This document shows positions 10,947-64,000 of a DNA stretch of 64,000 bases, piece after piece. Below the pieces are notes generated by a model. The model had not been told where the DNA came from. It saw only the letters and a list, made by a program, of their open reading frames with translations, and did no database searches. Numbering within the stretch: the first letter of the stretch is position 1; each line of letters opens with the position of its first letter. A program made the position numbers and the translations under genes. The stretch spans positions 930,001 through 994,000 of the forward strand of contig NEEC01000018.1 of assembly GCA_002189035.1 (NCBI GenBank), written 5' to 3'. Source of the DNA: Utricularia gibba. Taxonomy: Eukaryota; Plantae; Magnoliophyta.

Positions 10947-11174
10947 GTATTTTAGAAAAATTTTAAAACCTATTTCTATTTTTCAAAAGTAAAAATAATT
11001 TTGTTTTAAAACAATTTCAATTATAAAAGTAATTTTATCAAAAAATACTTTCAAAATTATATTGTAAAAATTATTTTTGAAAAAGTAATGAGTTGTTTAA
11101 TTTTACTTCTTATTTTTATTTTTTTAAAATAATTTTAAAAAGTAAAAGTACATTTCAAAAATTTTACAAAATAC
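10947..11174. mobile_element. AT-rich MITE-like element, degenerate relative of the copy at 52240
   Basis: Imperfect terminal inverted repeats (GTATTTTAGAAAAATTTT / AAAATTTTACAAAATAC). The interior aligns by eye with 52240..52417. Confidence 0.45.
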
Positions 11175-11720
11175 TATTTAAATATGCTAAGTTTCTCAAA
11201 AATTGGGAACAAAAAATGACAAGCACTTAAAATTTGGAGATTATGTATATTAATGGGGAACTATTTATGTTATTTTCATTAAATATTGAGAACTAATCGC
11301 AATAATTTTAAAAATCTTAGTTATTTTTGCAGTTGAGTGCCCCATTATAATCTTATTCTACATTTTAAATAGAGTGAAAAAGAATCAAAAAATAGGGCGG
11401 TGCCCTTCCTAGTTTGATTAGCATGGGCCCAACGGACCCAATGTATAATGAGGCCTTAGAAATCCATTTTCTTGGCCCACACTTAACTTCGGAGGTCGGT
11501 TGTAAGTGGTCAACGCGTCGTCTCGAAGTCTCTGACCTGCCGTTAATTTTGAAGTTTTCTTCCTAAACATCACCGATTTGAGCCCGCAATTTTCCGTTGA
11601 GTCGCCTCTTTTTCCATCGTCAATCGCTGCCAACTGCTCTTGTGTACTTCTCCTTTCCGCGAGAATTAGCTCAAATTTTTCGTATGAATATTGTTTTGAT
11701 TCGTGAGAATTGTATGAGAA

Positions 11721-27946: not shown

Positions 27947-28270
27947 TGTTGAAAATGTTTATGTAGTTGTTTTGAGTAACGTAGCACCTTGTACTTCTCA
28001 TGAGAATTCAAATACCATCAACCGTTTACAACAGGTTTGAGAGATATTTAAAACAATACAAAGGGCCATAGTTGACTGTTGAGACATCTAGTAGTGGGCC
28101 TGAGTGGTTTACTTCGGTTTGGGCTTTCCTATAGCTAGTGTTGGACCTTGCTGTTTAATTGATCCAGTAACTTTCCTTGTCCACAGTTGTTCTATCATCG
28201 ACAACTGCTGATGTGCGGAGACGACAACAGAATCCTACCTGTTCGACAGCATAAGCAGCAGTCTTCAACA
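27947..28270 (-). repeat. 3' LTR of the copia element (324 bp)
   Basis: TGTTG...CAACA termini. Direct repeat of 32301..32616, preceded on the minus strand by the purine-rich tract AAGGGAGTG. Confidence 0.92.
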
Positions 28271-32300: not shown

Positions 32301-32616
32301 TGAAAATGTTTATATAGTTGTTTGGAGTAACAGCTTGTACTTCTCATGAGAATTCAAATACCATCAACCGTTTACAACATGTTTGAGAGATATTTAAAGC
32401 AGTACAAAGGGCCATAGTCGACCATTGAGACATCTAGTAGTGGGCCTGAGTGGTTTACTTTGGTTTGGGCTTTTCCATAGCTGGTATTGGACCTTGCTGT
32501 TTAATTGGCCCAATAACTTTCCTTGTCCACAATTGTTCTATCATTGACAGGCGCTGATGTACGGAAACGACAATAGAATCCTTACTGTTCGACAGCATAA
32601 GCAGCAGTCTTCAACA
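32301..32616 (-). repeat. 5' LTR of the copia element (316 bp)
   Basis: About 92% identical to the other LTR (~26 substitutions and 3 small indels by manual alignment) and adjacent to the PBS. Confidence 0.92.
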
Positions 32617-33542: not shown

Positions 33543-35775
33543 ATGGGTTCTTCGCAGGAGCACCAGAGCTGGCTGGACTTCTCCCTTACCAACAACAATC
33601 ACCTCTCTTTCTCCTCACAGTCAACCTGTGCTGCTGCTGCTCCTGGTTAGTTCACCTACAGGATTGCTGGATTAGGGTTTGGTTATCTTAATCTTTGAGT
33701 TGGCTGATCAAAGATAGTTTTTGTGATTAGTCGGGGGCTATCATCATCGTTTCTCCAACCTGGAGGAGTACCTCAACGGTGGCTCTGGCTCCAGCTCCGG
33801 GGTGGCGACGGATGGGATCTGCGGTGTCAACTTGTACGTCGACAGTGATGATTTGGAGGTGAAGAGAATCGGTGGAGCTGGAAACTGCTGCTTGGATGAT
33901 GACCAGAAGCAGATCACTGCAACGCCCCCAGAGGAGCCGCCGGCTAAGAAGATGGCGGTGGCGGCGGAGAACTTCGGCCAACGGACCTCTGTTTTCCGGG
34001 GGTCACGAGGCACCGCTGGACCGGGAGATACGAAGCTCATTTGTGGGATAACTCCTGCAGACGCGAAGGTCAAACCAGAAAGGGACGACAAGGTATGTTC
34101 TTACACCACATACCGCATCTTGTCGGATTAGGGTTTTCTATTCCCTCTTCTCCCTCGTGACCCTACCTCCATTTTTTCCCATGGAAAACCAACAAATGGA
34201 ACTCGAACAACTTCAGTGTATTTAGGTAAACTTAAACAGCAAGGCTTTGCTTCTTCTTCTCCTTCTTCTTCTTCTTTTCTTTTGTTTTCTTCAAATTTTG
34301 ATTTGGTTCGCTTTACTGCATCAAGGTGGATATGACAAGGAAGAAAAAGCTGCGAGAGCGTACGACCTCGCAGCCCTCAAGTACTGGGGTCCGGCCACCA
34401 CCACCAACTTTCCGGTGAAATGAACACCATCAAACCCTTAAGATCAGTAACACTGAACATCACCCTGATTAACTTACATGATCAATGCGTTACAGGCGTG
34501 TGAGTATGAGAAGGAGATGGAGGAAATGCAGCATATGACTAGACAAGAATTCGTAGCTTCTCTCCGAAGGTAGGGATTCTGATACCAAATCACCAGTAGA
34601 TTCATCCTTTCATTTGAATGCAAATGACGCCCAAGGTTCGTTGCAGAAAAAGTAGTGGGTTTTCTCGGGGTGCCTCCATTTACAGAGGAGTCACCAGGTA
34701 TTCCATTCCAAGTTCAATGTTAAATTCATCGTAACCAGCTTTCCTCAGGGTTTAAACCCATTTATTATGAAGGCACCATCAGCATGGCCGGTGGCAGGCG
34801 AGGATCGGGAGAGTCGCCGGAAATAAAGACTTGTATCTTGGAACTTTCAGTAAGCGAAAAACACAAATCTTTTCTTTTTTTTTCAATGTTTGGTTGGGGA
34901 AGCAAATCTACTAAATTCATTAATAGGGATGAGGACAATTTCTTGAGTTAGCCTCATAATCTGAACATGGTTGCCATTGGCTTGCCTGAACGGTGGCCAG
35001 ATGCAAAACAACCACTCTTATCTTGTCCTAATTCTCCCATGTGGCACTCCGCCATTTGCCCTCCGTGACGGTGCTGAAAAAAAATAGAAAGAATAGAACG
35101 TGGGTGTTTCGGATCCCGGGCTTAGATCCAAGCACCATCTTCTCCATTCTTTTAGCTTCAATTTTATGGTGTTTTTTTGTTGCGAACTGTGGTCTCCTTT
35201 TTCATTCTTTCTAACAATTTAACGAATGGGTAGGGGAATGCACTGGTGAAAATTGCTTGTCCATGTGTTTTTTCATTTGTGGGTTGCCTGCAGGCACACA
35301 AGAAGAGGCCGCCGAGGCTTACGACATAGCGGCCATAAAGTTCCGGGGAGTGAACGCCGTGACCAACTTCGACATAACTCGCTACGACGTCGAGAGCATC
35401 ACGAGCAGCCATCTTCCGATCGGCAACAAGGTGAAGGCAGTCGAAGAGAACAAAATGGTGCAGGAAGGCCAGCTGATCACCAATAAGCAAGACGAGTCCT
35501 CGTCGAGTCTGCCACTGTGGGCAGCGCTGGGCTTCCAAAACCCGACACCCGGCCCGGACCCCATGTTCCCATCAATGATGATGATGGCTCATGGCCATAC
35601 GCCAACTTATGGAATGGGCTTGGGGTTGGAGTCCTCATCTGCGAACAGCAATCACCATCATGCTTTCTACGTCCCTGGTTCATACTCCTCCTATCATGGC
35701 CTGAGCTCCAATTTTATAGCCGGGGAAGATAACGGCACGGCGGAGCCACCGGGGAAACAGCCATCCGTACTGTAA
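33543..35775 (+). CDS. euANT-lineage (AINTEGUMENTA-LIKE/PLETHORA) double-AP2 transcription factor; 8 exons, with an apparent 1-nt deletion at 33998-34002
   Basis: N-terminal SWLDFSL motif. After restoring one G it reads [65 protein letters not shown], then linker [54 protein letters not shown] and [18 protein letters not shown]. Confidence 0.93.
34217..34225 (+). other. 9-nt micro-exon (V-Y-L) in the first AP2 domain
   Basis: CAG|TGTATTTAG|GT restores RQ-VYL-GG. A VYL micro-exon is an established feature of ANT/WRI-type AP2 genes. Confidence 0.9.
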
Positions 35776-36695
35776 TTGTGGAAATGTGGGTTGTGGTGGA
35801 CGTGAACCAGAGGTTTGCTTGTAGTCATTTGCATGAGTTGGAGGGGAATCCAGCAGGCGTTTGGTTATTTGGAGCCTGTGCCCCTCCTGTGTTGGCTACT
35901 CTGTTCTGCTGCTATTTTGGTCACCAGTTTTGCCTATAAAATTACCAAGAATTATTACACGCTGTGGCCTAGTTATCAGGTGCTGCCAACTTGGAACCTT
36001 GGCTCGTGTGACGGCTGTTGACTAGGGCAAGTGGCTCTGACCTGAGGCTCCACAATCTCCACACAGTAGACGGACGTTCGTTGCCCTCCCTTGGAACAGG
36101 GCGAGCTATCAATTGTGTGCACCAAGGCTCACATTTTGCTCATTTCCTGGAAAAAGGTTTTAAGTAAAAGCTCAAACTTCAGTGACATGTCAGCTTAACT
36201 CCAAGATTATAAAACTCAAGATCCAACTCGATTTATCAACTCCAAGATCAACGAACTCCACAGCATGAAATTGTGAGTCAGAGTCAAATATAAAGGGTTC
36301 ATATGCTGTCTGTGGAGACGACTGCTATTCGCCTCAGACATGCATGCCAAAAAGAGGCAAAAGAGCAAGCACTTTGAGGCAGAAGGGCACGTTATTGAGT
36401 TCAGATCTCCAACAAAAAGTCCACTGCATAAATTCAGAGAATGGATTACCTGCAAAACAGTATGAATCAAGAGACATGAACTATGGTTTTAATAAAACAA
36501 GGAGGCTATGGATTTACTATCGAGTTGCAGTAATCTTTTATGTAGTGCAACAGCTGAATCTACATGCATTTTGAGACAACAATTTAAAATCGCTAACATG
36601 CAAAAGAACCAGATCATTTATGCAAACTAAAGGGTAAATCAGTGAATGAGGGAATATAGAAAAGAGACATACCTGCTACGAGGATGCATAAAAAA

Positions 36696-39115
36696 TTATC
36701 TGCCTTTCAGAACTCTTTGAGGATCAAGCTGCCCACTGCAGTAACTAGACGGCACAACAGAAAGTTCCTGTCTTCCTCTCCATTCTTCACCAGGCTTCAG
36801 AATGATGGGTTTCTCAATAGCAGCGGACTCAATGCAGAGCATATGCCTATATTCAGTATCCCCAAAATCAGGCAGCGCTTTTGCCTTCTTATCCCAAGGA
36901 TTCCACACAACTGTGAATAAAAATGAAGAACAAAGTTAAAAACAACTCTAGAAATTGCTGTGTCCTATCCTAGTGTTTGTCCAGAAATGGATGAATATGT
37001 GCCTACACATGGTTTAGAAAAAGTTAGTCAAGATCTTTAAGAAAAGCCAGCTTGACAATTCTAGATCTAGAAAAGACGAGGCATCTGCAAAATCCCAGAT
37101 TTAAAAAACGCACTATGAAGGTTTGAAAATATTGTATTCATGATTTGGAACTACAACTTGTGTATGCCCAATCAAACTCACCTGCATCTGGAAGGCCGTC
37201 TTTACGAATGACAAAGGTTCGCTTTTTTTCATGATCCAGGATAGCAATCTTTGTAGGAGTGCTGAGGTATATTCTATCCACCTAATGGAAATGGAGAATC
37301 TCAAGCGTAATGGCTTACATTCGAACATTTAGAGGGTTACGAGCATCAATTTCATGAACTCACCTCATCCTCAAAGGTGATAGCATCTCCTTGTTCAGTA
37401 AATCGTTGTCTATTCTGTAGGTTATCTAAATAATCCAGCGTCTCCAGTCCTTCTACACGAACTTCACTGAATGATGTGTTCATAAAAAGATAGTAATGAA
37501 CCAAATATCCATCCAACACAAAAAATGTACAATTCAGAAAGGAATTATCACTAGCAATATCGAGCCAGATATTTTTTTTAAAGAAAATCATATGCAAGAC
37601 AAATATCATTAATACTGACAAAGTACCTGATGTCGGAAACAGAGAAATATGTGTGGTATGCAAAAGTAAAACTAAAAGGCTTTCCATCAGTACTTGTGTT
37701 TCTGACACGAGACGTCAACATAAGATCTCCTGATGGCCCTAGAGTTACTCGCAAACGGAACTCAAAACTGTAAGGGGGATATAGAGACAGAGAATTAAAA
37801 GAAGTTCATGCAACAAAAAATCATTTTTGAAACAAACGAGAATCTTCTAAGTTTTCACCTATGAGGCCACAATTTAAGGTCTGCTTCACTCGGCTTTAGA
37901 AGCAAGTCTACGAATGCCTTATTAGTAGAAGGTGTTGCAAAAGGTGGTGGGGAAGGATCGATTATCCATAACCTATTCCTAGCAAAACCGTGGCCTTCCA
38001 GTGGACCAAAGTTTGAGAACTAAAAATACAAAGCAGTTTAAATACCATGGCGGATGTTGAATGAAACACAGAAGGAGGTGATCTTACTTGAGGAAAGCAA
38101 AGAGGGATGCCCCCACGAATCGGCTTTGGTGGTTTAAAAATGGCCTGATGTATAAGGATTGTATGGTCAACATATTCAAATAAAAGAAAATAATTTTTGA
38201 AATGAATAACAGGTGATGAGATTTGAGATCTACAGCAAGAAATACATCATTTATTCGATCCCAAATATGTTAACGAATGTCTTGAAAACGAATACATATG
38301 CTAAGCATCCCAAGATATAATTCAAGTACTCTTCCTTATGCACGTAAAGAATGAAGACAGTCTCGAGGAAAAGATCACTTGTTTAATCCAAAGTATGCTG
38401 AAAAATTTATTAAAACCGAACATAGAGTAAGCATCTCATATTTTTATCCAACAACTCAGAATCGAAAATTGGAATTTTAGATACCAAGAAGAGATACCTT
38501 ATTACTGACAAAAAGTAATTCTTCTCTACTCTCATTCTTCCATGATGTTACATGAGCTCCATACAAGTAGATCTGTAAAATAAATGACGAATCCATATTT
38601 GATCTGGAGGTTTAGCAAAATAAATATAAGATAGACGGAATCAGATTCTTGCAAATCATTTTCACAATATCATCAAGGAGGACCCATAAAACTCTACTTG
38701 TAAAGTGAAATCCATAAGCATGATCTGCAGAATGTATCAGACCCCTGTCGTTTACACCAAAGCATATCAATTGCACAAAGTTCCAAATTACATCACAATC
38801 TCTTGCCAAATCATGCCGTCATGCATATAACTACGGCGTAAGCACCAGGAAGCTTTTCAGAACATAGCGTGAAAGAGTGGAATCAGGCGTGCGCCTCCCG
38901 AGTTTCAAAAAAAATTCAGCTAGAAATACAGATCAAGTGATTCGCCAGTGAAAAATCAGAAACCGAAAGGTCAATACCTCAACGGAATTGCCTCGAATGT
39001 CTCCTAGGATAATCTTCTCGAGGCCGTTAACGCCCTTCGTTATATGGTAGGGAGGAGCATCGGCTTTCGCATCCTGCTCTGCCGCCGACGTTGCCGGTAC
39101 CCCTGCCGAAGACAT
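36696..39115 (-). CDS. Putative glucose-6-phosphate 1-epimerase (aldose 1-epimerase / galactose mutarotase-like family); 8 exons
   Basis: Exon 1 (39115..38978) ends GNSVE. Later exons read IYLYGAHVTSWK, IRGGIPLCFPQF, HGFARNR, FTFAYHTYF, VDRIYL, DGLPDA and VVWNPW...MLCIE; all introns are GT-AG. Confidence 0.93.
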
Positions 39116-39274
39116 GTTGGATCACCGGAGATTTGTGCAAAAGCAAAATTATATTCGTATTCTGTTCTGTTCGTTCCCCCAATATCTGAATTCCGAACCG
39201 AATTTTACGTTTTCCCATCGAAAATGCTTTTTCCATTTCGAAAATATTATTGGAGTATAATATAAGTTTTTGAG

Positions 39275-39345
39275 TGGGCCGGGCCGAGATGGGCTGGTTG
39301 ACTATATATAGACAAGTTATATTGGGCCAGAATCAATTTAGCCCA
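39275..39345 (-). promoter_or_regulatory. Core promoter of the epimerase gene: Site II (TGGGCY) cluster around a TATA-like TATATATA
   Basis: TGGGCC at 39275 and 39323, TGGGCT at 39290, AGCCCA at 39340, TATATATA at ~39303. Three of the four Site II-type motifs and the TATA-like element are retained in the copy at 61380-61433. Confidence 0.55.
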
Positions 39346-39461
39346 AGAAATGCATGGCTATTGGATTCAACAAGGATGGTCAAAACAAGGCTGTTTCAGA
39401 GGCAGCAACTTCTAGACTTTTGGGGCACCTGAAGCTCTCCTGTTCCTCGGCCCTTCTCTAG

Positions 39462-42101: not shown

Positions 42102-43623
42102 TTTCTTCTCTGTCAGTACCTAACACCGGTTTCACGAAACGCGTAGAAGCAAATTAAGAGGCATGCAACGCGACTGATTCCCCTAGCAGTATCAGATCTC
42201 CCATTATATTAATAAAGGACGAGTGAATGCATTTATAGAAACTCTACCAGTAAAATATTCAAGCACCCACCCACGCATGAACAGTAGTTTCAGTTTTCAC
42301 CGCCCTCCTCCACCCCTCCCCACCCCCCCATGAATTCGAACCCTTCAAAGCAAACACACCCAGAGCACATTCCGTAATCCGATAAACTGCAGGAATTCAA
42401 GCAATGCAGGTTAAAAAAACCCTACCGCGCGATGCTCTGAGGGAGAATTGCAGTGGCAGCAAGATGCCCACCTTCTGTTCGATTCAATTCCATTTCTTTT
42501 TGTTTTGTTTCCATTTTCATGTTTATTTAAACTGCTATACGAGTCAAAATCAGTGCATGGGTTTCCCGGGATGGCGACAAAGCAGCATACTGGTTTAAAA
42601 CCGGGTCCAAATGCGGGTCACAACTTGGACACCCTATATGGCCACAAACCTCTGTAGCTTGATTCCTTTTCATGTTTCTATGGACACCAGCCGAGTGGGT
42701 CCCATAGGCACGGCTTCATTCACTCGCTACATTTAATAACTTTGGGATAGGTTTGGTCGGTGGTTATAATAATATTTTATTTTTAATAAATGCTTTTTAG
42801 GTAATTAGATTTAACCCAAACTATAGGGTAACATGATTCTATTTAAAAAATATGTATTCATGTTAATAGTACCATTTTTAAGTACATAAAAATATATTAT
42901 TATAGGTATTGAGATTGAGATTCCATCCCATTTGTAGTACGCATTCATTATTTTAATAATATTTTATTCATAATAATAATTTAAGTTTATAATTTTTCTT
43001 AAAAGTATAAAAAAAGAACGAGATCGGCTCATGGGCTTTCGATTTGTTAATTTTGAGGGTTTTAATTTGAAATAGTAACGCGAACGAATGGTGAATATTT
43101 CAACTTGAGAATCCTATGATCCTATATAAAATCGCAGTTAGCTAATGTTTTAAAATTTTAAAATATAAGGTAAGTACACTCTCTTGAAAACCAATGTCCC
43201 AAATAAAATCAAATAAGATGGCACCATAGGTAAATAAAGAACATGAAACCAAAATAACAATAACTTACATTAATAATCCTAAAAAAAATAACAGGGGATA
43301 TGGTCAGAACTTCATAATATATTAAATGTTCAGAAGGAAATTACTACTTTACCCCTATCTCACCACTGTCGTCTGTCGCCTAGTTTTGCGGGTCGGAATA
43401 CTGGAGCGTCGGGACTGGGCACCTGGCGTGTCAATTAGAAAACACCCAATGTCACAAAAACTATTCACAAAATTGCAACAGTGTGTATTAAATTTACGAA
43501 ATTGTACTTTCTTTAATGTGTATATAAATATTTTATCATAAAGATTATAATTTGTATTTTTATAATACTTAATAATAATTTTCAGTAAAATATTTTTAAT
43601 AAATAATTTTTTATATTTTTCAG

Positions 43624-43897
43624 AAATTATTGTGATCTTATAAAATATATATTATTAGTATTAAAATTATTTAAAAAATATTTTTTAATTATAAAAACGA
43701 GTTTTTTTTAGATTAGAAATTATTTTGATTTAATGAAATATATATTATTAGTATTAAAATTATGTTAAAAATATTATTTATTATAAAAACGAGTTTATTT
43801 TAGATCAAAAATTATTTTGAACTTATGAAATCTATATTATTAGTGTTAACATTATTTATAAAGTATTATTTATTATTAAAAACGAGTTGATTTTAGG
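43624..43897. repeat. Three diverged ~92-bp tandem units flanked by imperfect inverted repeats (43445-43510 / 44005-44087)
   Basis: The unit core AAATTATT..GA....TAT.AAATATATATTATTAGT.TTAA.ATTAT...AAAAACGAGTT....TTAG recurs three times. The flanks share AATTTCGTAAA, AATACACAC and TTTTGTGACA in inverted orientation. Confidence 0.65.
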
Positions 43898-50576: not shown

Positions 50577-52239
50577 TCTCAAATACTCAATGTTTGTTTT
50601 GATCGAACTATTATTAAAATGAGTTGAATAGAATTTTTAATTGTTTTTAGAAAATTATTATTATTATTATTATTATTTATTAATGTTACTTCAATTTATA
50701 GTGAATATAAAAAAAATTAATTTTTTAAGTTTCAAAATTACGTTATAAATTTGTTTAATTTAATTTTTTTGTAAATAATTTATTCTCAAATTTATAAAAT
50801 TAAATATTTAAACCCATATATTAATAAAACTAATCAGTTGTGATACTAACATCATTATAAAGATACATAATTATAAATAATATATATAATTTCATTCTTC
50901 CTATTCTGATTGCCTTATTATCGTCAAACTCCAAAAAATTACGAAACGTGAACACTATATAACTCTAACAAAAGATTTTGATTGGTTGATCTTTATACGC
51001 AATTGAAAAAAAACTTCATCGCAAAATTTTGTTAGGTATGAAATTAGAGTTGGTTCATATTACCATGAACCGGTTCACTTTTTGAAAATTTTAAAAATCG
51101 TTTGGATCTTCATTCTATGATTTTGAAAATTTTATTTTTTTTTTTTACAATTTTGAATGTTGAAATTCAGATTGTTGATATTAATTGAAACATGAATTAC
51201 TGTTTTTACAATTTTTTTCATTTGTAATATATTAAAAATATTATTATAAAATATAACTATAAAAACATAACATGAAATTTATATGATTTATAAACCTAAA
51301 AATTATGTAAGGATTTGGAAATAATACTGTTTTACATGTTCAACATCAGTATCAATTAGAGGTTTCAAGATATTGAATATAAAAAATCGAACATACAATA
51401 ATTTTCAAATGAAATCAGATATAATTTCAAATCGTATCCTTCAACTTCTCTTAACCAAGTTTCATTAACCTTATTTTGGTTAAAGCATTAATCTTATGAT
51501 ATAAAAAAAAATTTGAATCCATACGCACAAATGGGATGTGTAACATAACAAAAACCAAGTATTTGATCATGTCTTCATTATTACACATTCAAATTGGAGA
51601 CAAACCGTTATTCCGGTATTACAAAGTTGGCTCCCGCCGCCATTAATACAACAAGGATTGACTTGAAATTGTTGCATCCTCGTAGAAGAAAAAAGGTTGT
51701 GGGGGTGCCCTACGTATCCCGATTGGCATCAAAACTCCATAAATTCTTGCATCCTCGTAGTCTACGGGCTGGAGCCTCGTATTTCAAAGGGCGCCCCTTC
51801 TTCACCCTACTGGGAAATTGGGGTGTCTTCCTCAACCCCAAAGTCAACTACCCATAACTAACACAACTGCAGTTTTTTTTTTTTTTCCTTTTGTTTATGG
51901 TGCAGAAGTATTTAGAACATGAATTTGATTTCGGTGGAATGTAGGATTGCGGAGCATGGTTTTTTTTAATAGAAATATTTAAATTTGATACAAATTAAAT
52001 GAATATATCTTATATAGTTTATTCAAAATAATGAATGAAAAAATTGTCTATTTGTACCAATTTAAAGAAATGAATATATTAATTTATCGCATTTGTATAC
52101 ATTTTTATAATAATTATCATAATGAATATTCAACTTATTTAAACTGTTTGTTATTTATTATATATTATAAAATATAATGAAATATTATTTAAATAAAAAC
52201 AAAATTGAATACATATGAGAAATTATTGAATATAAAATA

Positions 52240-52417
52240 GTGTTTTGGAAAATTTTTAAAATCTATTTCTATTTTTTAAAAATAAAAATATGTTTGTTTT
52301 AAAATACTTTTAATTATAAAAGTAATTCTATAATTACTTTTATTTTTATTTTTTATTTTTACTTTTCAAAAATAATTTTGAAAATTAAAAACAGATTTCA
52401 AAAATTTTCCACAACAC
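52240..52417. mobile_element. 178-bp MITE-like element with TA flanks
   Basis: ~25-bp near-perfect TIRs (GTGTTTTGGAAAATTTTTAAAATCT vs reverse complement of AGATTTCAAAAATTTTCCACAACAC), TA on both sides, and a related copy at 10947. Confidence 0.65.
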
Positions 52418-54555
52418 TAATTAAGTATACTTCTAGTCCCTTTTTTCGTAATAAAATAATATAAAATCATAAAAATCAAATAACTAAAATAAAACATATC
52501 ATATAAACAGAATGTGAAACATAACTTAGAAGATGTTATTACACGCGGACGGAGACACGTAGCATTAGCTAGAGAATCTTAAAATGATTTGATATTGAAT
52601 TCGGGTGGGTTCCGATCCATCGGATTCTTCGTCTATTTGAGAGTTATTTTTCCCAAGTTGAGATTAAAATAATTCTGGAGGTGATATGATTCTTGGTTAG
52701 GGAATCATTTTCTTGTAATCCATAAGATTGCTTTCAATCTAAAAAAGTCATAACGCATGTGACGCATTCAACCATGACCCATTCTCGATTCTATAAACAC
52801 TAACATAAATTAATTGTTTAAGATTTAATTAAGCAATCATTTTGTATTTAATTACAATTCCTAGACGCTCATTACAAGCCAGTCGTATTGAGTCGTGAAA
52901 ATGGATCGTACAATGAAAAGTTAGGTGTTCGAAAGATAACCTTATATTAAACTTTATTAGATTTTTTAATTAAATTTTATTATTTGAATCACAAAATTAA
53001 GAATGCGCGTATTAAAATGGTTGAGATTATTTTTGATAAATACAAGTATATTAAAAAGATTAAAAATTATATTTTTAAGTTATTTATATGTAATTTTTCT
53101 CATTTAAGAAAATGTTAGGTAGACAGAACGCTACACTATTCTGAATTTTTTTTAATAAAATAAATAATTAAAAAAAATCTACTCAAGTTCATGCATTTTT
53201 TTATAATGTTCACTTGGGAATATCATCTTCAAAAAGGGTTTTTTAATAAGAATTATTGTAATCAACGAATTAAAATTTCATTTAAAAAAAACAAATGATT
53301 ATGATTTCACAGTACCGTTCACAAAAGTTACATTGACCAATATTCGAAATTGGACTTCCGATTTAAACCAAAATCAAACTTTTAGTCAATTATTTTTAGG
53401 GAAAATGACCCAAGAAATTTTAAGAATAATTAATTTATTTAAAAAAACTAAAATCCAAAATTTTGACAAGATTTTGCAAGTTTATTATACGTTCCTATTT
53501 TGATGGGATTAGCATAACACTTCGAACAATAACTAGCTTAAATAACCAAGAATCCGGACTAATCTTGTATGTTCGGTTCACATAATTTCGTAAATTAATG
53601 TTTTTTAATTTCTTGAATAGATAAATCATTTTGTAGTAAAATAAAAATTTCAAATTTTACGATTAATTTCAAAAATATAAATTTTTTAAATTTTTATTTT
53701 AATTATTAAGTAAAATATTAATAAAAAATTATAGTATTTACTTTTATTTAATATAAAAATATATTTCTACCATAATATGAAAGTATATAATAATTTAATT
53801 AATTAAATTTTAAGTATATAATTTAATTTAATAAATTTTATAATATAATTATATACTATACAGTATAATATTTTTATAATCTTAAATTAATTCTATTCTA
53901 CATCATCTAAATATAGATTAATAATATAGAACACGGCCTTAATCCCACAATAAAATGATATAATGGCAATAATCGAAGGAATTTGCAAATGGTTTCCCAA
54001 TCAATATTTCTAATTTTTAGATAGTTTTTGGAGAAATATTGCACTCATTTTTACTTTTCTAAAAGTAGACACAAAATTATTCTATTCTTAAGGTTAGTGT
54101 TAAGATGAAATCTATAAAAGTAAAAATAGTAATAAGAAAAATTATATTTTAATCTATATTTAGTGTAAATTAAACATATTTTTTGATAGAAATAAAGTAA
54201 AAATAAGTTGTATTTGGTAGAAAAATAATTTTTATTTTTGGTTTAAATATTTTCCGGAAGAGTGATTTTCTGGAAATGAGAAGTTTTAAGAGTGTTATTG
54301 TCACAAAAAAATGCAAATAGTTATTAAATCAAAGCAACTGTTGTCATTATAATAATTAACACCATATAATTATAGTATAGTAACCACTAATTAATGCATA
54401 ATTAAAAATGTAAATAGATACATAATCCTCATTAGGCCCCTAAATATGCACACTAAAGTTGTGATTAATTGAGTCAGCGGGACAAATTGGTTCACTCATT
54501 ATAAAGGCGTTGGGACATCATCTTCTCGTGGGTTTCTTCTAACCATCACCAATTC

Positions 54556-55367
54556 ATGGAGGAAGACGACGAAGCACCTCTTGGTCTGGGGCTCCGCCTC
54601 GGGATCGGGGATTTCACGGCTGCCGGAAAGCCGAGGAGCGGCAAGAAACGAGTGTTCCTTGTCGATCTCCCGTTCCCGGTTCACAAAAGCAGCAGCGACG
54701 GGACGACGAGCGCCGACGATTCGAGTTTGAAGGAGGAAGTGGATGAAGGAGGAGGAGGTTGCAGCAGAAGCTATTCGAAGGATTTTGGAAGGAAGAAATT
54801 GAGGCTCACTAGAGATCAGACCTCATTGCTTGAAGATAGCTTCAGACATCAGACTACCCTCAACATGGTAATTGCATTAAGGGTGTGCTAGGTTTGTTTC
54901 TTGTCGCGTCTGGGGATTCTGATTAGGGTTTTTTGATCCACTCCAATAGGCTGAGAAACAGGCTCTAGCAGAGAAACTCAAGCTGAAGCCCAGACAAGTA
55001 GAGGTTTGGTTTCAGAACAGGAGGGCAAGGTTAGGGTGAAAGATCTCATTTTTTTATCCGTATAATGTTGATAAACTAAGCACAGAATGAGAGGAAGAAC
55101 TCAGTTCTGTTCCATGTCAGATGATTTCAATTCCATATCCTGAAATGCAGGACTAAGCTGAAGCAAACAGAAGTGGACTGCGAGCTCCTGAGGAAAAACT
55201 GCGAGAGACTATTGGAAGAGAATCGTCGACTAAAAGAGGAGTTATCGAAACTGGGAAAAGTCCTCCCGGAGTTCCTCCGGAGCTCTACGGTGCCGGAGAA
55301 GACAGGGAAACATCAACATAGGGGTGGCGGGGTGAAGCCGGCGGTGGTCCCGGAGCACCAACCCTAA
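54556..55367 (+). CDS. HD-Zip class II homeobox-leucine zipper protein; 3 exons (54556..54867, 54950..55030, 55151..55367)
   Basis: EAR-like LGLGLRLG, homeodomain [10 protein letters not shown]...LEDSF...[14 protein letters not shown] and zipper start [13 protein letters not shown]. Confidence 0.92.
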
Positions 55368-57227
55368 TGATCACCGTAGACGGCTTCAATATTACTAAAC
55401 TTACATGTATCAAATGAAGTGAATTCATAGGCCGCCCTGCCCTTAGCATGAGGATTTTTTCTGGGCTATGCCTCTGTGCTTCCACTCATTTGCACAATAC
55501 CATACAGCAAACCCTAACATTCCCAGTTCCCAATTCTGGCCATTGGAATTAATGATCTCATAACCCTGAAAAAAATGATGGCCAATCATAAGACATCAGA
55601 AAAAGAAAAGAAAAAAGAAGGAAAGAAATGTCTTAAGTATCATAATTGTAAGAGGATTGAAGATGGGAGACTTTGGTAATAATTATTTATGAAGTCGTGG
55701 GGCAATTCTTTTCCACACTAATCAATTATCAGCCATCCTGTTAGTCCAATAATTTGATTATTTTGGGGCAAAATCAGCAGAATCTACTGCCCTAGCCTGC
55801 CTGCATCATCATCCATTAAACCCTAATCCCCCACTAAGTTACCCCACATTGCAGTAATTTCAAAAAATACTGAGCAAACCAAGAGACGACGTCGTTTCCT
55901 ATTTCTGGGGCTGTGTATGCTAGGAGGAGAAAAAGACGGGTGGAGTTTGCCACCGTCACTACAATCAGTATAAGAAATTTAATCATAATTTTCAAAATTG
56001 CATCATAGTTTCCTCAATCTATTTTTTTGTAAATAGTTTACCTCTCAATTTATCAAAATTATATATTTAACTCTTCATATTATCAAAATTCATCAATTTT
56101 GATCTTAATATCATTATAACGGTGTATCCTTATGGATTTCGATTCAACTAACTTTAGATGCAAATGCAAAAAATCATAGCATGAATTGTTTTTGGATTTA
56201 AAATTAAATTCAATTTACAGTATTGTGAATCAGTTCACTTTTAAAAAATTTTAAAAACTATTTAAATCTTGGTTAACAGTTTTAACATTTTGATATGTTT
56301 TTTTGTAATTTTGAAACTTAAATATTAAATTCTTTATAATAATCAAAACTTGAAGTATTTTTATTGTAATTTTCTCAAGAAAAAGACTTATTTCAATAGG
56401 CATATTGTTGATGCTTCTTCATCTCTTCCCTGTCCCAACTGCCATTGGAATGAGTTGACTGACTGTGGCAGCCGACAAACAGAGAGGAGGGGTTACTATT
56501 ATTTGCAAACTTCACCAGTTAAACAACACCAGAGCAAGTAGAAGTGGAACAAAACTCTTAAATGCAGTTGCCAAAGCCTAGAGGCGTAGCCCCATGTTCT
56601 TCTCCTTGCCTCTTTCTCATCTAATCTACAGTACTGTACAACTGCAACCTCATCTCCATGTATTTATTGTACTACGCAGTAGAAATTATGCTACATGACT
56701 GGAGACAGATCCCATTCTCCCTTGGAGGCACGCTCTGCCTTGCCAACTGCTAGCCGACAAAAACCAGTTCAATGGAAAGGAAGAGTTAGAAGTGGATTTC
56801 TGGAAAACATAACTTGTTAGGGTGTTGTGATGAACTGTAAGAGATCTGATGTTTCTGGTAATGAGATGATCGATTACTTATGGAACTGTATCAGCCCTTC
56901 AACAAGGGTAAACAATGTTTAATGTAGTTACCAAGTGTCGTTCAAGTTAAGTCAATCTTGTGTTCCTTCTTCCAAACACATCTCGTGGAAAACCCGAATT
57001 ATGTTAGGCAAGACAGATTGATTGCATAATAACAAGTCACTGGTAAGAATAGTTCCCAGGTCCAAAGACTGGAATGCATGCAATAGCTGCGCTGTGTGGA
57101 GTCCATCACGAAAGGTGAACAGTTTTCTCATATTGCTGGAGGGAAAAATGATTGGAAATGTTGCTATGGTCGTTGCTAGGGACATTACTATCAGTTGGAT
57201 AGTAAACAGAAGCACAAGGGTGGGAGA

Positions 57228-58470
57228 TCAAAGCTCGTCCTCGTCGATCCCAATAAGCTTTGCAAGTTCTCCACTTTCGTATGCTTCCAGAGTGTCTGCA
57301 ACCAAAGAAATCCAGTTGACACATTGCGTAGAAAAATGGAATGTGGATGACCAATGAGGGTACCATCAGAGCCTCCAATGTGTTTCCCATGAACGAACAC
57401 CTGTGGGACGGTTCGTCGTCCCACGATCTCAGAGACAGCTTGCTGGATTTCAGGGCCATCATCTGAAAATCAATGGTGAAAGCATTAGCTGAAAGGTAAA
57501 CAAGTGAACTGTATATCCGGATGAACATTCATAGAATCATGAACTAGGTGCTACCCCAACTGGGAGAAAGAAAAAACTAATGAAAACATCACTGGATGCC
57601 TGTCTATCAAAGCTCCTTTGATATTTTATTGTGTGTAATTCAGGATGATTTAGAGTAATGAAAATATGAACCTTGTTCATCGAGTTCAATGATGTAAGGC
57701 TTCTGCATCAATTCCTTGAAGACTGCCTTTGCCCTTTTACAGTATCTAATTAGGGAAAACACGCCACAGTCAAGGAAGCAGAAATTCAATGGCCATATGG
57801 GGGTGGGGGAGTGGGTTGAATCACTTCATCAACAAGTTAACAGGGGGATCTAAAAAGCAAGAAAGTGCAATAAAAGAAAGTGTTCATCAACATCTCAAAA
57901 AAACACTCAATCCCATGTCCTTCAGAAAGCAAGCTTTCTTGATAAAAATCTACTTCTTTCGTATACCACGAAAAATCTGCATTATATCAATGATCTGAAA
58001 CCTCATACAGCCCCAGACATTCAACTTAATCCAGAGAGCTGGATCTAATATAAAATGGGACAGAACAGGCGGAATCGGATCCCGCAAATCTCCCAGTGCC
58101 ACAGACATAAGAAATAACCGTAAAAGCACACGATATACCAGATTCAACAAATTTGACCCAAAAAACATCGCCTAAGATTTACTTCATCGTGCATAGAAAA
58201 CCAGAAATCCTCAACACATGACCATACAGAATGCACCCATTAGCAAATTCAAGGGAAACCCAAAACGAATCAAAGAACAAGCAGTCCATACGGGCAATAA
58301 GATTTGGAGAAGATGACAATGGGGTGAGATTCAATAGTCTTCTTCACGAGGGAAATCCGCTGTTCCAGAGAGATTTCGGTGGCCACAGAAAACGATGTCA
58401 GGCATGCAAGCACCAGTAACGCCATCAATGAAATGAAACGCAGCGATGACAGCACGGTGGTCGTCGCCAT
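57228..58470 (-). CDS. GRXC4: Glutaredoxin, CPYC class, with N-terminal signal/anchor; 4 exons
   Basis: SKSYCP|YC active site split by intron 1, [25 protein letters not shown] and an acidic C-terminus DEDEL*. Confidence 0.92.
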
Positions 58471-60039
58471 CGCGGATCCCCAAGGTTTAGATGCGAATAG
58501 AAAGAGTCCTTCAAGGAGGCGAGCAACGCTTCTACTCAAGCGACATTCTTTAATTGAAGTCAACAAAATTTAGCAGAAAAAAGGAGTAAACGAAAGAAAA
58601 TATACAAAGAAAGCTACCCCTGTTTTTCATTTTAGAAAAGTGGCCATTCAGTTGAAAAAAAAATGATCAATTTATAATCTATTTTTAAAAGTAATTATCC
58701 TAACTTTATATCTTACATAATTAATTTTTTATATATATGATAATTATTTTTCTCACAGAGTAAAAAAAAAAAAGATGATTAATTTTTAAATTCATGCTCA
58801 ATAATTTATATCTAAATTTTTTGTCTTTAGTACTCAAGTGAGGAATTGATATTGACTACCAGATCAAGCTCAAGGTTATCTCATGAAAGGAGGAAGTTTC
58901 ATATCTAAGTCTGAGCTTGCAACAATGATGATGTGGATAGTTGGTGCAAAAATTGAATCAAAAAAGTGTTCAAGACATTTATTTTGAATTTGTGATTAAT
59001 TAGTCTCTTTTTTTATGGTATCTTTAGGTTTACATGAATGAATAATCAAATTTTAAAAAGTTAAAATATCATGTCAGATTCTTTATTAACATGCTGATTC
59101 AAAATAGTGCACACTTAAAATATTATGATTATACATCATTATATGAATAATTATTACTTTTATTTGTTATTACCATAAGACAATGAGTCACATATTGGCT
59201 CCCTTGAACACTCCTTTTATCAAAAGGGTGTATGTAAAATACCACTCATTTTAAAAATATTAATTAAATACCACTTATTTTAATTTTAAATAAAATAACA
59301 AACTATTATTGTGTGTGAAATTTTTGTTATACATTTAAAATAAAATAGTTTAAAATAACTATTATTTTAAATTAAATTATTTTCAAACATATTTATTTAA
59401 TAATAACAATTTTATGTATTGTATGATCATTTCTTGTGGTATTTTTACATGACTTATGTATCATAATTGACATTCACGTATTCTTCAGTGTCATCTAATA
59501 TTCCTAAAAATTACTAAAGATTATGTATCATCTGTTTAAAAATATGTGTATATAATATTATTTAATTTATTAAAAATATAAAAATAAATATTTTTCATCA
59601 AAGCATTAAAAAATATGTTTACCATTGTAATTTTGAACATATAAACATTAAATTAAAGCATTATTTAAAGTAAATATGCCTATAATTATATTTTGAAAAA
59701 AAATTATCCATTTATTTTTAATATATTAAATATGTGCTTATTTGTTATTATTTCTATCATCAAGACAGAAATACTGAGCAAATAAATAAATCAAAAAGAG
59801 GTATTCATCAAAATTTGTAAGAGGAAATATCCCCCAGCCGTCGCACAAAGAGTAGAAAAACTGATAACAACCTTGGGATGTTCGAGCGAGAGGCACACCT
59901 AATACAGTATAAAGAAGTTCGGTTTTTCGAATCAAATATGAAATCTGAAACTTTTTTGAATTTCAGCCTATCATGTACTCCTACTATTCCTAGGAAGTCA
60001 ATTGCATGAATACATCAGTGTACCAGTGGAGTGATCTGT

Positions 60040-61221
60040 TCAACCATTCTTAGTAACATATGAGATGAAGAGGTGAAGGTTTTCCAGCCCTAAAGTGAAG
60101 ATTGCACCGAACAAAAAGATCAGTACAAAGGCCAACAATATCTTCCCCACATACAGAAGAGTGAGAGGAGGCTTCTTTGGCGCTGCAGAGTCATGGACAT
60201 CACCATCCTGAAGCCACAAGTAATTGCGATCAACGCCAAGTAAGATCCATGTACCAAGATGATGATTCCATTAACCGTCACACTAATGAAAAGCTCAAAA
60301 TACATGCAGTAAAATATTGTCGGGAATAACAGGGCTTCCTATATTTGATCTGATCCTCACCAAGCTGCTTTCATGATAATGACATTAACATTTCATTATA
60401 CTAATACCAGTAATACTAACTTTTTAATTATAAAAAAATACAGTTCTACTCACAACTAATTCCAAAGGGACTGAATTCCTAAACCCAGGTCACCGAAATG
60501 TAACATTGGAATAACAAAAAAGGCCTATACCTGAGTGGCTTTCCTCCTCCTTCTGCCATGGTGTTCTTGTTTATCATCCATGCCTACCAAGGCAAAAGGA
60601 AAAGCACGAATCAGTCAATATTCAAAGAAGGGTAAGCCAAAAAATCATATCTTCACCATATGATTCAGTGGCAGCCGTTCGCAACTTCCATCCGGAACCA
60701 TAGTCAACTAGCAGAGATCTGTGGCCAAAGCTAACGGGTTCTTCTTCTCCCCTGAAAGCCTCAATGTGCGTTGCTAATAAAACATCCCCCGCTTTAGCTT
60801 CACTCAGCAATTTCTTGTTGATCAAGTCAACAGCAAAACCCGCTTCAGTTCCAGCTGAAAAGCGCCTAGTTTTCCCCGAACTCGTGCACAGTACCTCAAT
60901 AAACTAAATATTGATGCAGTAAATACAGTTAGAATAAAGTCAATCATCGAAGACTCGATTTTATTATTGAGCAACAGCTTTCCAGAACATAGCGTGAAAG
61001 AGTGGAACATATCAAAAAAATTCAGCTAGAAATCGAGATCAAGTGATTCGCCGGTGATAAATTGGAATTCGAAAGGTCAATACCTCAACGGAGTTGCCTC
61101 GAATGTCTCCAAGGATGATCTTCTCGAGGCCATTCACGCCCTTCGTTATTTGGTAGGGAGGAGCATCAGGTTCCGCATCCTCCGCTGCCGCTGACTTCGC
61201 CGGGATATCAGTCGAGGACAT
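60040..61221 (-). CDS. Predicted chimeric 201-aa gene: epimerase-derived exon 1 (61221..61084) plus three exons (60903..60657, 60583..60531, 60207..60040) of an unrelated uncharacterised plant protein with a C-terminal transmembrane helix
   Basis: All three introns are GT-AG with matching phases (0, 1, 0), and the ORF is uninterrupted to TGA. Exon 1 is 117/138 nt identical to epimerase exon 1. Exon 2 carries EVLCTSSGKTRRFSAGTEAGFAV...HIEAFRGEEEPVSFG...GWKL; exon 4 carries LLYVGKILLAFVLIFLFGAIFTLGLENL. Confidence 0.78.
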
Positions 61222-61450
61222 GTTATATCACCTGAAATTTGTCCAAAAGCAAAACCGTATTCGCAGTCTCCTCTTCCTTTTTTCCCCCAATATCTGAATT
61301 CCGTACCGAATTTTATGTTTTCTTATCGGGACTGCTTTTTCCATTTCAGAAATATTATTGGAGTGCAACCGTTTTTTAGTGGGCTGGCTAAGTATATATA
61401 GAGGATATATTGGGCCAGGATCAACGGAGCCCAAAATATGCGTAGCTATT
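60970..61450. repeat. Duplicated block homologous to 38841..39365 (epimerase promoter, 5' UTR, exon 1 and 5' part of intron 1)
   Basis: Collinear similarity from AGCTTT.CAGAACATAGCGTGAAAGAGTGGAA to ATTGGGCCAG.ATCAA...AGCCCAA.A.ATGC.T.GCTATTG; similarity stops on both sides. Confidence 0.95.
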
Positions 61451-61819
61451 GTATTTTTAAAAAAGAAAAAAATATTTGTTAAATTTTAGTTTTGGATAAA
61501 ATAATCTTTTTGTTAATTAATACAATAACATAATTTAAATACATTTTAAAATTTACAGAATGTTTGATTTCAATTAATTATTTTTTAAGGTTTGGATTTG
61601 GTTTTATTTATCTGGTTTTTTAATATTGAAAGCTCTATAAAAATTAAAAATATAATATTTTAATAGGATACATATCCGACAGTGTCGGACCGACACTCTG
61701 ATAAATCGGGCTCTTGAAAAAACAGACACGAGCTCAAGGCCCAATTAAAGCTCAGCCTATCATTAAGTAAACAGTGACTGATAACGGGTGAGTGATTAGA
61801 ATACTAATTGGTATTAGAA

Positions 61820-64000
61820 ATGAGGTTAAGTGCGTTTGTGAAGAAGGGGAAAAGGCAAGCGCCAAGACGAGAGAATGCCTCCTCCAGTTCGTCTCTGCGA
61901 ATGCGGACCTCAGATTCCGCCCCTCACCCCATTTCCAAGCGGGGGAATCGCTCCATCTTCTACGCTTTCTCTTCCTTGCTTGTTTTCCTATTTTGCGCAT
62001 TCCTCCTCAGCAAAAACGTTCTCCACCCACCAAACCTCGATTCCTACATCGATTTCATTTCTAGGAGGGCGCCTAATGATGCTTTGGAGAAATCTGGTCA
62101 GTCACAAAACCCCGCGTCTGTGGATCTTGATGAGGTAGGAGAGAAGGGAGTGGCCTCATCGTTGAAGACTGAAAACAGTGAAGAAGCAGCAGTGCCCGTG
62201 TCATCAAGTTCTGACCTTGATGTTCAGTATGATCAGAAATCAGAGGCTAGCCTGAAAACCAGCGACCCCAAATCGTCGTTTGAGGAATTTGATCTTCCCG
62301 ATTCATCAACATCGGTTATTGACGAGAAAACTGAGGGAGTACAAGGCGTACTTTACATCTATGGGGCATCTGTTGAGAAGGGAGTTCCATCAGGCGCTAA
62401 TGCGGCTGCTATTGACAATGTATTTCTCGAAAAGCTGAGGAATTGTGACTTTTATAGAGGTAAATGGATCGAGGATGACAACCGTCCAATTTATGCACCG
62501 GGCAAGTGCCCGTATGTGGATGAAGCTTTTGATTGTCAGAGCAATGGGAGGCCTGATTCCGGCTACTTGAAATGGAGATGGAAGCCCGACGAATGTGATC
62601 TTCCCAGGTTGTTCATGTATTACTTTTTGCTACTGTTCACTTATTCTTGGGTCCGGGTAATGGTGGTCCATAGCAATCCTCAATTATTATGCTTGTTCGG
62701 ACCATAATCTACTTTTTTGAGCCATTTATTGATGAGAGAGGATACATTCGTAGTATGTGAATTTTACAGCCTTAGAAAAAGATTCTTTGAGGAAGAAAGG
62801 ATTGCACTTTCCTGTAAGTATACATGAGAAAAAGTTAAAATTTAGCTCATTGTGTGATTTTGTGTTTCCTGCCAACTCTTTACGCCTGTGGTCCTTTTCA
62901 CCGTGGTTGACTGTAACGCTGATGTAGGTGTGATAATTTCGTTTCGTTTTTTCAATGTATGGTTGCTATATCAGGTTCAATGCAACAGATTTTTTGGTAA
63001 GACTTAGCGGAAGGAGGCTTATGCTGGTGGGAGACTCAATGAACCGCAATCAGTTTGAGTCTCTCCTCTGTCTCCTGCGCGAAGGGCTGCCTGATAAGAG
63101 TAGAATGGTTGAAATCCATGGCTATAAAATCACAAAGGGACGAGGGTACTATGTTTTCAAATTCGAGGTAACTGCAATCTTGTGATCAAAATTTACTTAC
63201 TCTGAAAGCTAATGTAACACACTAGTTGGTGAATTCTGTGAAGCAGGATTTCAACTGTACTGTGGAGTTTATCCGATCACATTTTCTTGTGCGTGAAGGG
63301 ATTCGTGTGAATGCCCAAGGAAACTCAAACCCCACTTTGTCTATTGACAAGATCGATAAAAGTGCTAAACGTTGGTTGAGAGCTGATATTCTTGTTTTCA
63401 ACACGGGACATTGGTGGACTCATGGGAAGACCTCCAGAGGGTATGCTCCAACATTTCTCATATCCACGTTCCGCATCTAACCCCAGTGTGATGGTGCAGC
63501 AAAAACTACTATAAAGAAGGGAGCTACCTTTATCCCCAGTTTGATGCTGTTGAAGCATATAGAAGAGCCATTCGGACATGGGCTAAATGGATCAAGGCCA
63601 ACATTAGCACAGACAAACTTGTCTTGTATCGGGGCTACTCATCTGCACATTTCAGGTATCATTTCCTCTTGTTACGCTGCATTCATGCATCACAAATGTA
63701 GAAGATTTTAGTGTCTTCCTCACGCATAAACAGAGGCGGGGACTGGGATTCTGGTGGAACGTGCAATGGTGAAGACAAGCCTGTCGTTCAAGGGGCAATC
63801 CTCAAGAGCTACCCTGAGAAGATGACAATTCTGGAGGAAGTCCTCAAGGAAACTGGCGCCCCAGTTGTATTACTGAACATCACAACCTTAACCAACTATC
63901 GGAAAGACGGACATCCGTCGGTGTACGGCAAGAACGTAACCGGGCAGAAGAAGGTTTCTGCAAGAAGGCAGGATTGCAGCCATTGGTGCCTTCCGGGAGT
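61820..64000 (+). CDS. TBL5: TRICHOME BIREFRINGENCE-LIKE polysaccharide O-acetyltransferase (TBL5-like); 5 exons, 3' end outside the window
   Basis: N-terminal TM segment, CDFYRGKW...Y..GKCPYVDEAFDCQSNGRPDSGYLKWRWKP, GDS motif (LVGDSMNRNQFES), FNTGHWW, RKDGHPS and DCSHWCLPG at the window end. Confidence 0.93.

Follow-up and report, generated by a model that had tools for sequence, protein, structure and literature searches.

How does a gene come to carry the promoter and first exon of an enzyme to which the rest of it bears no resemblance? The question is raised by a locus at positions 60040-61221, minus strand, of a 64,000-nucleotide (nt) stretch of the Utricularia gibba genome (assembly GCA_002189035.1, contig NEEC01000018.1, positions 930,001 to 994,000 of the forward strand), referred to hereafter as the window. 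A first-pass annotation had read this locus as an intact chimeric gene, in which the promoter and exon 1 of a glucose-6-phosphate 1-epimerase gene are fused to three exons of an unrelated gene for a membrane-anchored protein. The duplication on which that reading depends, an open coding sequence (CDS) of 606 nt and the corresponding spliced RNA were all found, and we conclude that the locus is in all likelihood a genuine chimeric gene, which is expressed and which selection probably maintains. Its recipient part comes from a conserved plant family that has neither a name nor a Pfam model, and that is called the X family here for brevity.

Joining of the segments 61084-61221, 60657-60903, 60531-60583 and 60040-60207 gave an uninterrupted 606-nt CDS for a protein of 201 amino acids (aa), in a translation identical to the one first proposed. 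The three introns, in phases 0, 1 and 0, all have GT..AG splice sites. The three foreign exons and the phase-0 acceptor stood as annotated, apart from a small correction that places the start of exon 4 at 60207. In the following, copy A denotes the epimerase source at 38851-39367 and copy B the segment at 60976-61455 of the chimera, which, in the order of transcription, is made up of these parts.

61350-61455, minus strand: copied epimerase core promoter (alignment, blastn and divergence table)
61222-61349, minus strand: epimerase-derived 5' untranslated region (5'UTR; RNA contigs and list of open reading frames)
61084-61221, minus strand: coding part of exon 1, with the ATG, 46 epimerase-derived codons and the phase-0 donor GAG/GTATTG (alignment to copy A)
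60976-61083, minus strand: proximal part of intron 1, from epimerase intron 1 (13% mismatch to 38851-38977)
60904-60975, minus strand: distal part of intron 1, not epimerase-like, with the acceptor TTTAG/TTT (random identity to copy A)
60657-60903, minus strand: exon 2, 247 nt, ubiquitin-like beta-grasp domain (phmmer, structure model and RNA joints)
60531-60583, minus strand: exon 3, 53 nt, basic disordered linker (RNA joints; the homologous exon has 56-59 nt in canonical genes)
60040-60207, minus strand: coding part of exon 4, 168 nt including the stop, with the rest of the linker, a predicted membrane helix (residues 169-187) and a 14-residue tail (hydropathy; the Paulownia exon has the same size)
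59871-60039, minus strand: 3'UTR (reached to 59871 by an RNA contig of run X3 and to 59966 by one of run X1)

Copy B is a duplicate of ~480 bp of copy A, about 80-85% identical to it by MAFFT, blastn and the repeat finder, and lies on the same strand at a spacing of 22,106-22,108 nt (families D2 and D8 of the repeat finder). The duplicate itself had been recognized in the first pass, and its limits have since moved by 2-10 nt at each end. Over ungapped columns, mismatch between the two copies is lowest in the intron part (13%), slightly higher in exon 1 (15%) and highest in the promoter and 5'UTR (21%). Directly past both ends of the segment, mismatch jumps to 60-69%, the level of random sequence, and the duplicated unit is thus short and sharply bounded. 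Homology to the donor covers 234 nt 5' of the ATG and 108 nt of the intron, with four indels in 339 nt of copied noncoding DNA. The source of the segment, and the gene to which it belongs, are as follows.

38851-39367, minus strand: copy A, with promoter, 5'UTR, exon 1 (38978-39115) and proximal intron 1 (MAFFT, repeat finder and blastn)
36696-39115, minus strand: parental glucose-6-phosphate 1-epimerase-like gene, Aldose_epim (open reading frame pieces; Pfam PF01263 on three exons)

Exon 1 of the epimerase gene ends in the same GAG/GTATTG and joins in phase 0 to exon 2 at 38572. Among the exon pieces at 36696-38596, three match the Aldose_epim profile, two of them above the cut-off, at profile positions 13-42 (exon 2), 129-169 and 250-298. 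Copy A therefore runs in phase into an Aldose_epim exon, which bears out the epimerase origin of the promoter and first exon of the chimera. No further epimerase exon was found downstream of copy B. The transfer went from the epimerase gene to the chimera, since exon 1 is integral to the epimerase frame and the epimerase motif occurs in none of 237 X-family proteins. The donor parent is intact, the recipient part belongs to a separate family, and donor and recipient parts show no similarity to each other.

The chimera is not itself an epimerase, a candidate identity that was ruled out: the borrowed exon covers at most about 12 of the 299 positions of the Aldose_epim profile, the parent's exon 2 beginning already at position 13, and the exon 1 peptide of the chimera has no Pfam match. 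A protein-atlas search with epimerase exon 1 returned fragments resembling RecA at chance level, with recognition below threshold, and these matches were disregarded.

The RNA evidence comes from assembled Logan contigs of four runs labelled RNA, from three studies, placed on 59000-64000. The joint 61084-60903, which skips 180 nt (CT..AC on the plus strand, hence GT..AG on the minus strand), was present in all four runs, as was the joint 60530-60206. The third joint, 60656-60582, was found in three of the four; in the fourth, the same intron was shifted by one base beside a sequence difference. All three junctions implied by the first-pass gene model thus exist in RNA. In every run, coverage was absent from introns 1 and 3, from the sequence beyond 59835 on the downstream side, and from at least ~300 nt above 61349, up to the transcript of the neighbouring gene; in none of the four was a contig found that bridged the uncovered ~300 nt or more (the length depending on the run) directly upstream of 61349. 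The zero depth in introns and flanks indicates that the material is spliced RNA and not contaminating DNA.

The transcript originates from copy B, because the exon 1 piece of the contigs of runs X1 and X3 (61084-61349, 266 nt) matches this copy without a single mismatch, over a stretch in which the two copies have diverged by 15% (exon 1) and ~19% (5'UTR). Both contigs end at 61349, ~45 nt downstream of a TATATATA box that is located at ~61393-61400 and kept in both copies. As this end lies within the copied segment, transcription starts inside it. The chimera would probably be expressed in a pattern like that of the epimerase gene. The runs X5 and X6 carry a few single-base differences, indicating that more than one genotype expresses the gene.

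These data also dispose of the concern that the locus is a misassembly. Two copies of ~480 bp could in principle confuse an assembler, but at about 80-85% identity they are too divergent to collapse; independent DNA runs from the same organism contain 0.96 of the words sampled across 60800-61500; and mRNA contigs from three independent studies link the copy-B-specific exon 1 to exon 2. An artefactual joining of two unlinked loci is thus vanishingly improbable. Misassembly is excluded, and the 201-aa reading frame lies on a real mRNA.

Translation of the conserved part depends on the borrowed exon. Because exon 2 is without a start codon and no internal in-frame methionine occurs before residue 130, the ubiquitin-like domain can be made solely from the borrowed ATG. 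The 5'UTR holds an upstream open reading frame (uORF; 61228-61344, minus strand) that begins with an ATG at 61344, runs for 38 codons and stops 6 nt short of the main ATG. Its ATG is common to copies A and B, and in the epimerase copy the frame (39027-39236, minus strand) reads out of frame across the main ATG. This upstream ATG may serve in the control of translation and may have arrived together with the promoter.

What did the borrowed exon replace? The coding exons of four canonical X genes were mapped to their genomic loci in Paulownia, Erythranthe and, as two paralogues, Fraxinus. All four genes have four exons, of 42-54, 247-259, 56-59 and 168-171 nt; those of the chimera measure 138, 247, 53 and 168 nt, and the last exon of the Paulownia gene also has 168 nt. 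In the canonical genes, exon 1 codes for nothing but the leader, of ~14-18 aa in these four, and has a phase-0 end, and exon 2 opens exactly at the sequence F-L/V-E-V. Exon 2 of the chimera begins at the homologous residue, and its acceptor at 60903 is therefore ancestral. Homologues of the gene accordingly start with another exon, a 'MAE...' leader, followed by an intron at the identical place and phase. The chimera lacks this short leader and has 46 epimerase-derived residues instead. Homology to copy A ends at 60976, within intron 1, so that the junction is intron-to-intron, and the 72 nt at 60904-60975 are presumably a remnant of the recipient gene's own intron 1. The frame was preserved across the fusion because the donor and recipient introns are both in phase 0. 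A search upstream for a relic of the ancestral leader exon gave insignificant proline-rich matches only, the best of them on the wrong strand within the epimerase-derived exon.

These observations show how the two parts came together. About 480 bp of the epimerase gene, comprising the TATA promoter, the 5'UTR, the 46-codon ATG exon and ~110 nt of intron 1, was copied at the DNA level and joined inside intron 1 of an X-family gene, 22 kb from the source, replacing exon 1 by recombination within introns. The epimerase donor now splices in frame to the old X acceptor, and the chimera relies on the copied promoter for its transcription and has the epimerase ATG as its predicted start of translation. 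Origin as a retrocopy is excluded, since promoter and intron sequence were copied along, and the event took place at the DNA level. In the simplest reading the segment arrived as a small templated insertion or by end-joining, and we infer that the copying itself involved end-joining or templated repair.

Two other routes were considered. Capture by a transposon was ruled out, as there were no convincing inverted repeats and no repeated flanks: a search around the segment and the gene found no terminal inverted repeats (TIRs), target-site duplications or Helitron ends, and only weak AT-rich inverted matches (70-84% over 19-44 nt). Alternatively, the chimera could mark the junction of a ~22-kb tandem duplication with ends in intron 1 of the X gene and intron 1 of the epimerase gene, one copy of which was later mostly lost. 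The layout is as predicted for such an event: the intact epimerase gene lies downstream of the chimera on the same strand, the copies being 22,106-22,108 bp apart, and tandem duplication is a documented source of chimeric genes (PMC5460883). However, homology stops abruptly at 61455 and 39367, only ~235 bp before the ATG; the window contains no second repeat pair spaced by about 22.1 kb; and the upstream TBL neighbour (61.87 kb) has no copy near 39.8 kb. A large tandem duplication was rejected on the second of these grounds when sought directly in the window, and we consider it improbable as the origin of the chimera.

The first-pass annotation had noted a resemblance of exons 2-4 to a conserved plant family, and database searches agreed. 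An exhaustive phmmer search with exon 2 matched 127 cluster representatives, with E-values down to 5e-69, and a profile search collected 346 X-family proteins, all named matches being from plants. Pfam has no family for exons 1, 2 or 4, and a literature search found nothing on the X family or on the fusion. Members usually have 165-185 aa and start with 'MAE' in a poorly conserved leader, which spans mostly 15-20 residues (range 10-30 among 157 members with a delimitable leader). The conserved block opens at F/Y-L/V-E-V, and the C-terminus consists of a hydrophobic stretch followed by ..LENLP.LIL.INSS. The chimera contains the beta-grasp motifs of the family (..EV.C.SSGK.RRF..GTEAGFA.., HIEA.K.GEEP.SFGP and GWKLQT) and keeps LENL, but has histidine in place of proline 191 and a modified end motif. 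Apart from its leader, it conforms to the X family in every respect.

An AlphaFold (AF2) model of exon 2, built with 72 relatives, had a predicted local distance difference test (pLDDT) score of 91.6 and a beta-beta-alpha-beta-beta-beta topology. Its structural neighbours are all ubiquitin-like beta-grasp folds (ubiquitin, FERM-F1 lobes, USP UBL, TGS and MoaD/ThiS), although each match is weak (E 0.03-0.3, template modelling (TM) score at most 0.64). The model thus clearly predicts a ubiquitin-like beta-grasp fold for the X domain, and no known family is close. In a full-length model of the Paulownia protein, the leader (residues 1-18) is unstructured (pLDDT 56-67) and is followed by the beta-grasp domain (19-97), a disordered linker (101-133, pLDDT below 50) and a long C-terminal helix. 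The chimera has a hydrophilic N-terminus, and its hydropathy profile shows a single peak, at residues 169-187, with a Kyte-Doolittle value of 2.83 for these 19 residues, after which 14 residues remain. This is the predicted layout of a tail-anchored protein, and hydropathy is in keeping with the C-terminal membrane helix that had been suspected. Fold and layout together suggest that X proteins most likely act as membrane-tethered protein-interaction modules, which in the chimera would carry a new N-terminal extension.

The X proteins found are annotated as 'uncharacterized' or, in several genomes, as 'Maltase-glucoamylase, intestinal protein'; nothing in their sequence or fold supports the latter name, which appears to be a spurious label spreading by annotation transfer. 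In other plants the ubiquitin-like domain is found in two or three tandem copies per protein, or fused to MuDR/FAR1 transposase-like domains (examples are P0001, P0003, P0005 and P0009; P0002, P0011, P0016, P0031 and P0051; and matches in AFDB). These arrangements suggest repeated shuffling of the module encoded after the phase-0 intron, and some of them may be annotation fusions. One Logan protein with a 56-aa N-terminus, P0004 (locus L002), was examined as a close relative or a second replacement and discarded, as it is not close (dS, the synonymous divergence, is 1.95). Its DNA similarity to the window starts exactly at the exon 2 boundary, and its extension most likely reflects an upstream in-frame ATG before a normal leader, not an exon swap.

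Is the product of the chimera under selection? Between copies A and B, 21 of the 138 nt of exon 1 differ, and their distribution is uneven. Codons 1-24 carry nine replacements, and codons 25-46, where the epimerase fold starts, carry five synonymous and no replacement differences, so that the last 22 borrowed residues are identical to those of the parent. Under a model in which constraint acts on the epimerase copy alone and copy B drifts at the noncoding rate (0.07-0.125 per lineage), the chance of finding no amino-acid change in those 22 codons would be 0.003-0.04. Purifying selection on the borrowed exon agrees with this test, which bears on a part of the exon. A fragment covering the first beta-strands of the enzyme appears to be conserved in its new context. 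Furthermore, the 606-nt CDS has acquired neither indel nor stop, and the joint chance of its staying open under neutrality is ~0.001-0.02.

In exons 2-4, the ratio of nonsynonymous to synonymous divergence (dN/dS) is 0.27 against Paulownia and 0.30 against Erythranthe, as compared with 0.17-0.28 among the canonical genes themselves. The terminal branch of the chimera is the longest in the X tree (0.86, the median being 0.09); dS is doubled along with dN, consistent with a generally fast-evolving lineage and not with relaxed constraint. Of 52 positions at which the family is at least 85% conserved, the chimera retains 46.

Several observations weigh against a functional chimeric gene of the structure described. 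Six family-conserved residues have changed (K97R, G99E, P107H, Q121R, P191H and S199K), and the conserved C-terminal ...PR.IL.INSS motif is altered. The tests of selection are short: they cover 22 codons and compare copy A with copy B directly, without an outgroup by which a change could be placed on one lineage or the other. The dN/dS of the X part averages over the time before and after the fusion. A collection of 5.8 billion proteins yielded neither the chimeric product nor any orthologue that shares its N-terminus. Support for the product comes from the levels of RNA and sequence, the protein itself being a predicted one. The RNA evidence consists of assembled contigs rather than raw reads and is silent on rare isoforms and relative abundance. 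Finally, upstream of 61283 one contig of run X5 continues for 244 nt that are unlike the window, and no canonical acceptor is present at that point; the extension is either a genotype-specific 5' end (5'UTR or promoter) or a misjoin of the contig at a G/A-rich stretch.

Some of these points would be expected if the chimera were transcribed but functionless, that is, a young neutral fusion that is spliced because its splice sites happen to be good. The gene is known at the level of RNA and sequence, the six conserved residues and the C-terminal motif have changed, and its branch is the longest in the tree. Against this, the copies have diverged by 13-21% (uncorrected), and yet the CDS is free of stops and indels; changes in the last 22 borrowed codons are all synonymous, and dN/dS in the X part is ~0.3; and the gene is expressed in all four runs, in three studies and in more than one genotype. 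We consider a functionless fusion quite unlikely. The comparisons provide moderate evidence of selection, and a selected, translated product is the likely reading of them.

The locus had been described as a new gene. It could equally be the species' only X copy with a replaced 5' end. The borrowed segment would then have overwritten the promoter and leader exon of an old gene, which was rewired, with nothing added to the genome. The X part evolves under a dN/dS (0.27-0.30) like that of canonical genes (0.17-0.28); its branch is long, but dS is doubled too, as for an orthologue in a fast-evolving lineage; and 46 of 52 conserved residues have been kept. In addition, no relic of the 'MAE' leader exon is found upstream, and a canonical leader that is disordered and poorly conserved should tolerate replacement. 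No second X copy is present within the 64-kb window.

The surroundings of the locus point the other way. A divergent R2R3-MYB gene lies 2.8-7 kb upstream of the canonical X gene in Paulownia, Erythranthe and both Fraxinus paralogues (L001, L003/L004, L005, L006), but the U. gibba locus is without this neighbour: there is no MYB gene in the window and, beyond the X gene itself, no synteny with the canonical loci. The TBL and glutaredoxin neighbours that it has instead fit a relocated partial copy at least as well. The locus is thus either a relocated partial copy or the product of a lineage-specific rearrangement. On balance, replacement of the 5' end of a sole X gene is a strong possibility that falls a little short of being probable. 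The genes nearest to the chimera are listed here.

61808-64000, plus strand: TBL gene with PMR5N and PC-esterase domains (Pfam)
57100-58566, minus strand: glutaredoxin-like gene downstream of the chimera (weak, sub-threshold Pfam match and CPYG-type motifs)
54556-55367, plus strand: homeobox-leucine-zipper-like gene (identified by eye; no Pfam match)

The TBL gene begins ~500 bp from the start site of the chimera, and the two may share a bidirectional promoter region. An AP2-domain gene, identified by eye (34200-35800, plus strand), adjoins the epimerase gene. Introns in the neighbourhood are short (59-370 nt) and genes are tightly spaced, as in a very compact genome. Repeats elsewhere in the window include a pair of 290 nt with 91% identity, 4.3 kb apart (27981-28270 and 32327-32616), a three-unit AT-rich array of a 92-nt tandem repeat (43582-43858), and two AT-rich segments at 10940-11188 and 52233-52431 (99 and 93 nt, 82-87% identical, ~41 kb apart) that look like miniature inverted-repeat transposable elements (MITEs).

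A profile weighted to exons 2 and 4 of the window returned only canonical relatives, and a search with the two exon-1 open reading frames returned no candidates of the chimeric type. The family tree places the chimera within core Lamiales. Noncoding divergence between copies A and B (0.14-0.25) equals about 15-35% of the synonymous length of the lineage's own branch, and the event is therefore well younger than the split from the other core Lamiales families.

As a natural replacement of promoter and exon 1, the locus is unusually clean: its breakpoints are mapped to within a few bases, the donor is intact 22 kb away, the position and phase of the ancestral intron are documented in relatives, and the spliced mRNA was seen in three studies. 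It also draws attention to a widespread plant family, without name or Pfam model, in which a ubiquitin-like domain would be tethered by a C-terminal membrane helix. We can speculate that events of this kind recur in this very compact genome, where modules of ~0.5 kb, each with a promoter, a first exon and proximal intron sequence, would be placed ahead of other genes by copying and then retained by selection; the 22-residue segment captured here would have acquired a role of its own beside the ubiquitin-like domain. This is rather unlikely on present evidence; if true, it would offer a tractable system for the joint study of expression rewiring and N-terminal novelty.

How does the chimera compare with known systems? 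Its first 46 residues come from a gene of the glucose-6-phosphate 1-epimerase type (PF01263), and this is the extent of its likeness to such enzymes. For the X part, the nearest parallel in design is provided by the MUB proteins of Arabidopsis. MUBs are lipid-anchored through a CAAX box. Like X proteins, they combine a single ubiquitin-like beta-grasp domain (PDB 4x57, 1se9) with a membrane tether at the C-terminus, but the X family has a hydrophobic C-terminal helix in place of the lipid anchor, shares no sequence similarity with MUBs and gives a weak fold match to them (E 0.1-0.3, TM ~0.4).

With regard to origin, Pack-MULE and Helitron elements also move short fragments with promoters and first exons, and can give rise to chimeric transcripts. 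In contrast to such captures, neither the segment nor the gene described here is flanked by TIRs, by target-site duplications or by other repeated sequence. The jingwei gene of Drosophila arose by retroposition of Adh. Genes of this type resemble the chimera in that a new N-terminal exon and promoter were recruited ahead of an existing coding unit; here, however, intron and promoter sequence were copied, at the DNA level and not via RNA.

The closest precedents are chimeric genes of rice, formed by partial duplication or exon shuffling at the DNA level (PMC3673630), and the tandem-duplication chimeras of Drosophila yakuba (PMC5460883). As in the present case, a 5' module of promoter and first exon precedes the later exons of an unrelated gene, the breakpoints are intronic, the parental gene is retained, and the chimeras are transcribed and show signs of constraint. 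The U. gibba gene differs from them in the very small size of the copied piece (~480 bp), which has two sharp ends and no visible large duplication around it, and in that the exon was replaced at an ancestral phase-0 intron, leaving the exon-intron structure of the recipient untouched. Recruitment of a promoter with a first exon is thus a known class and not a new one, of which this chimera is a very well-defined case.

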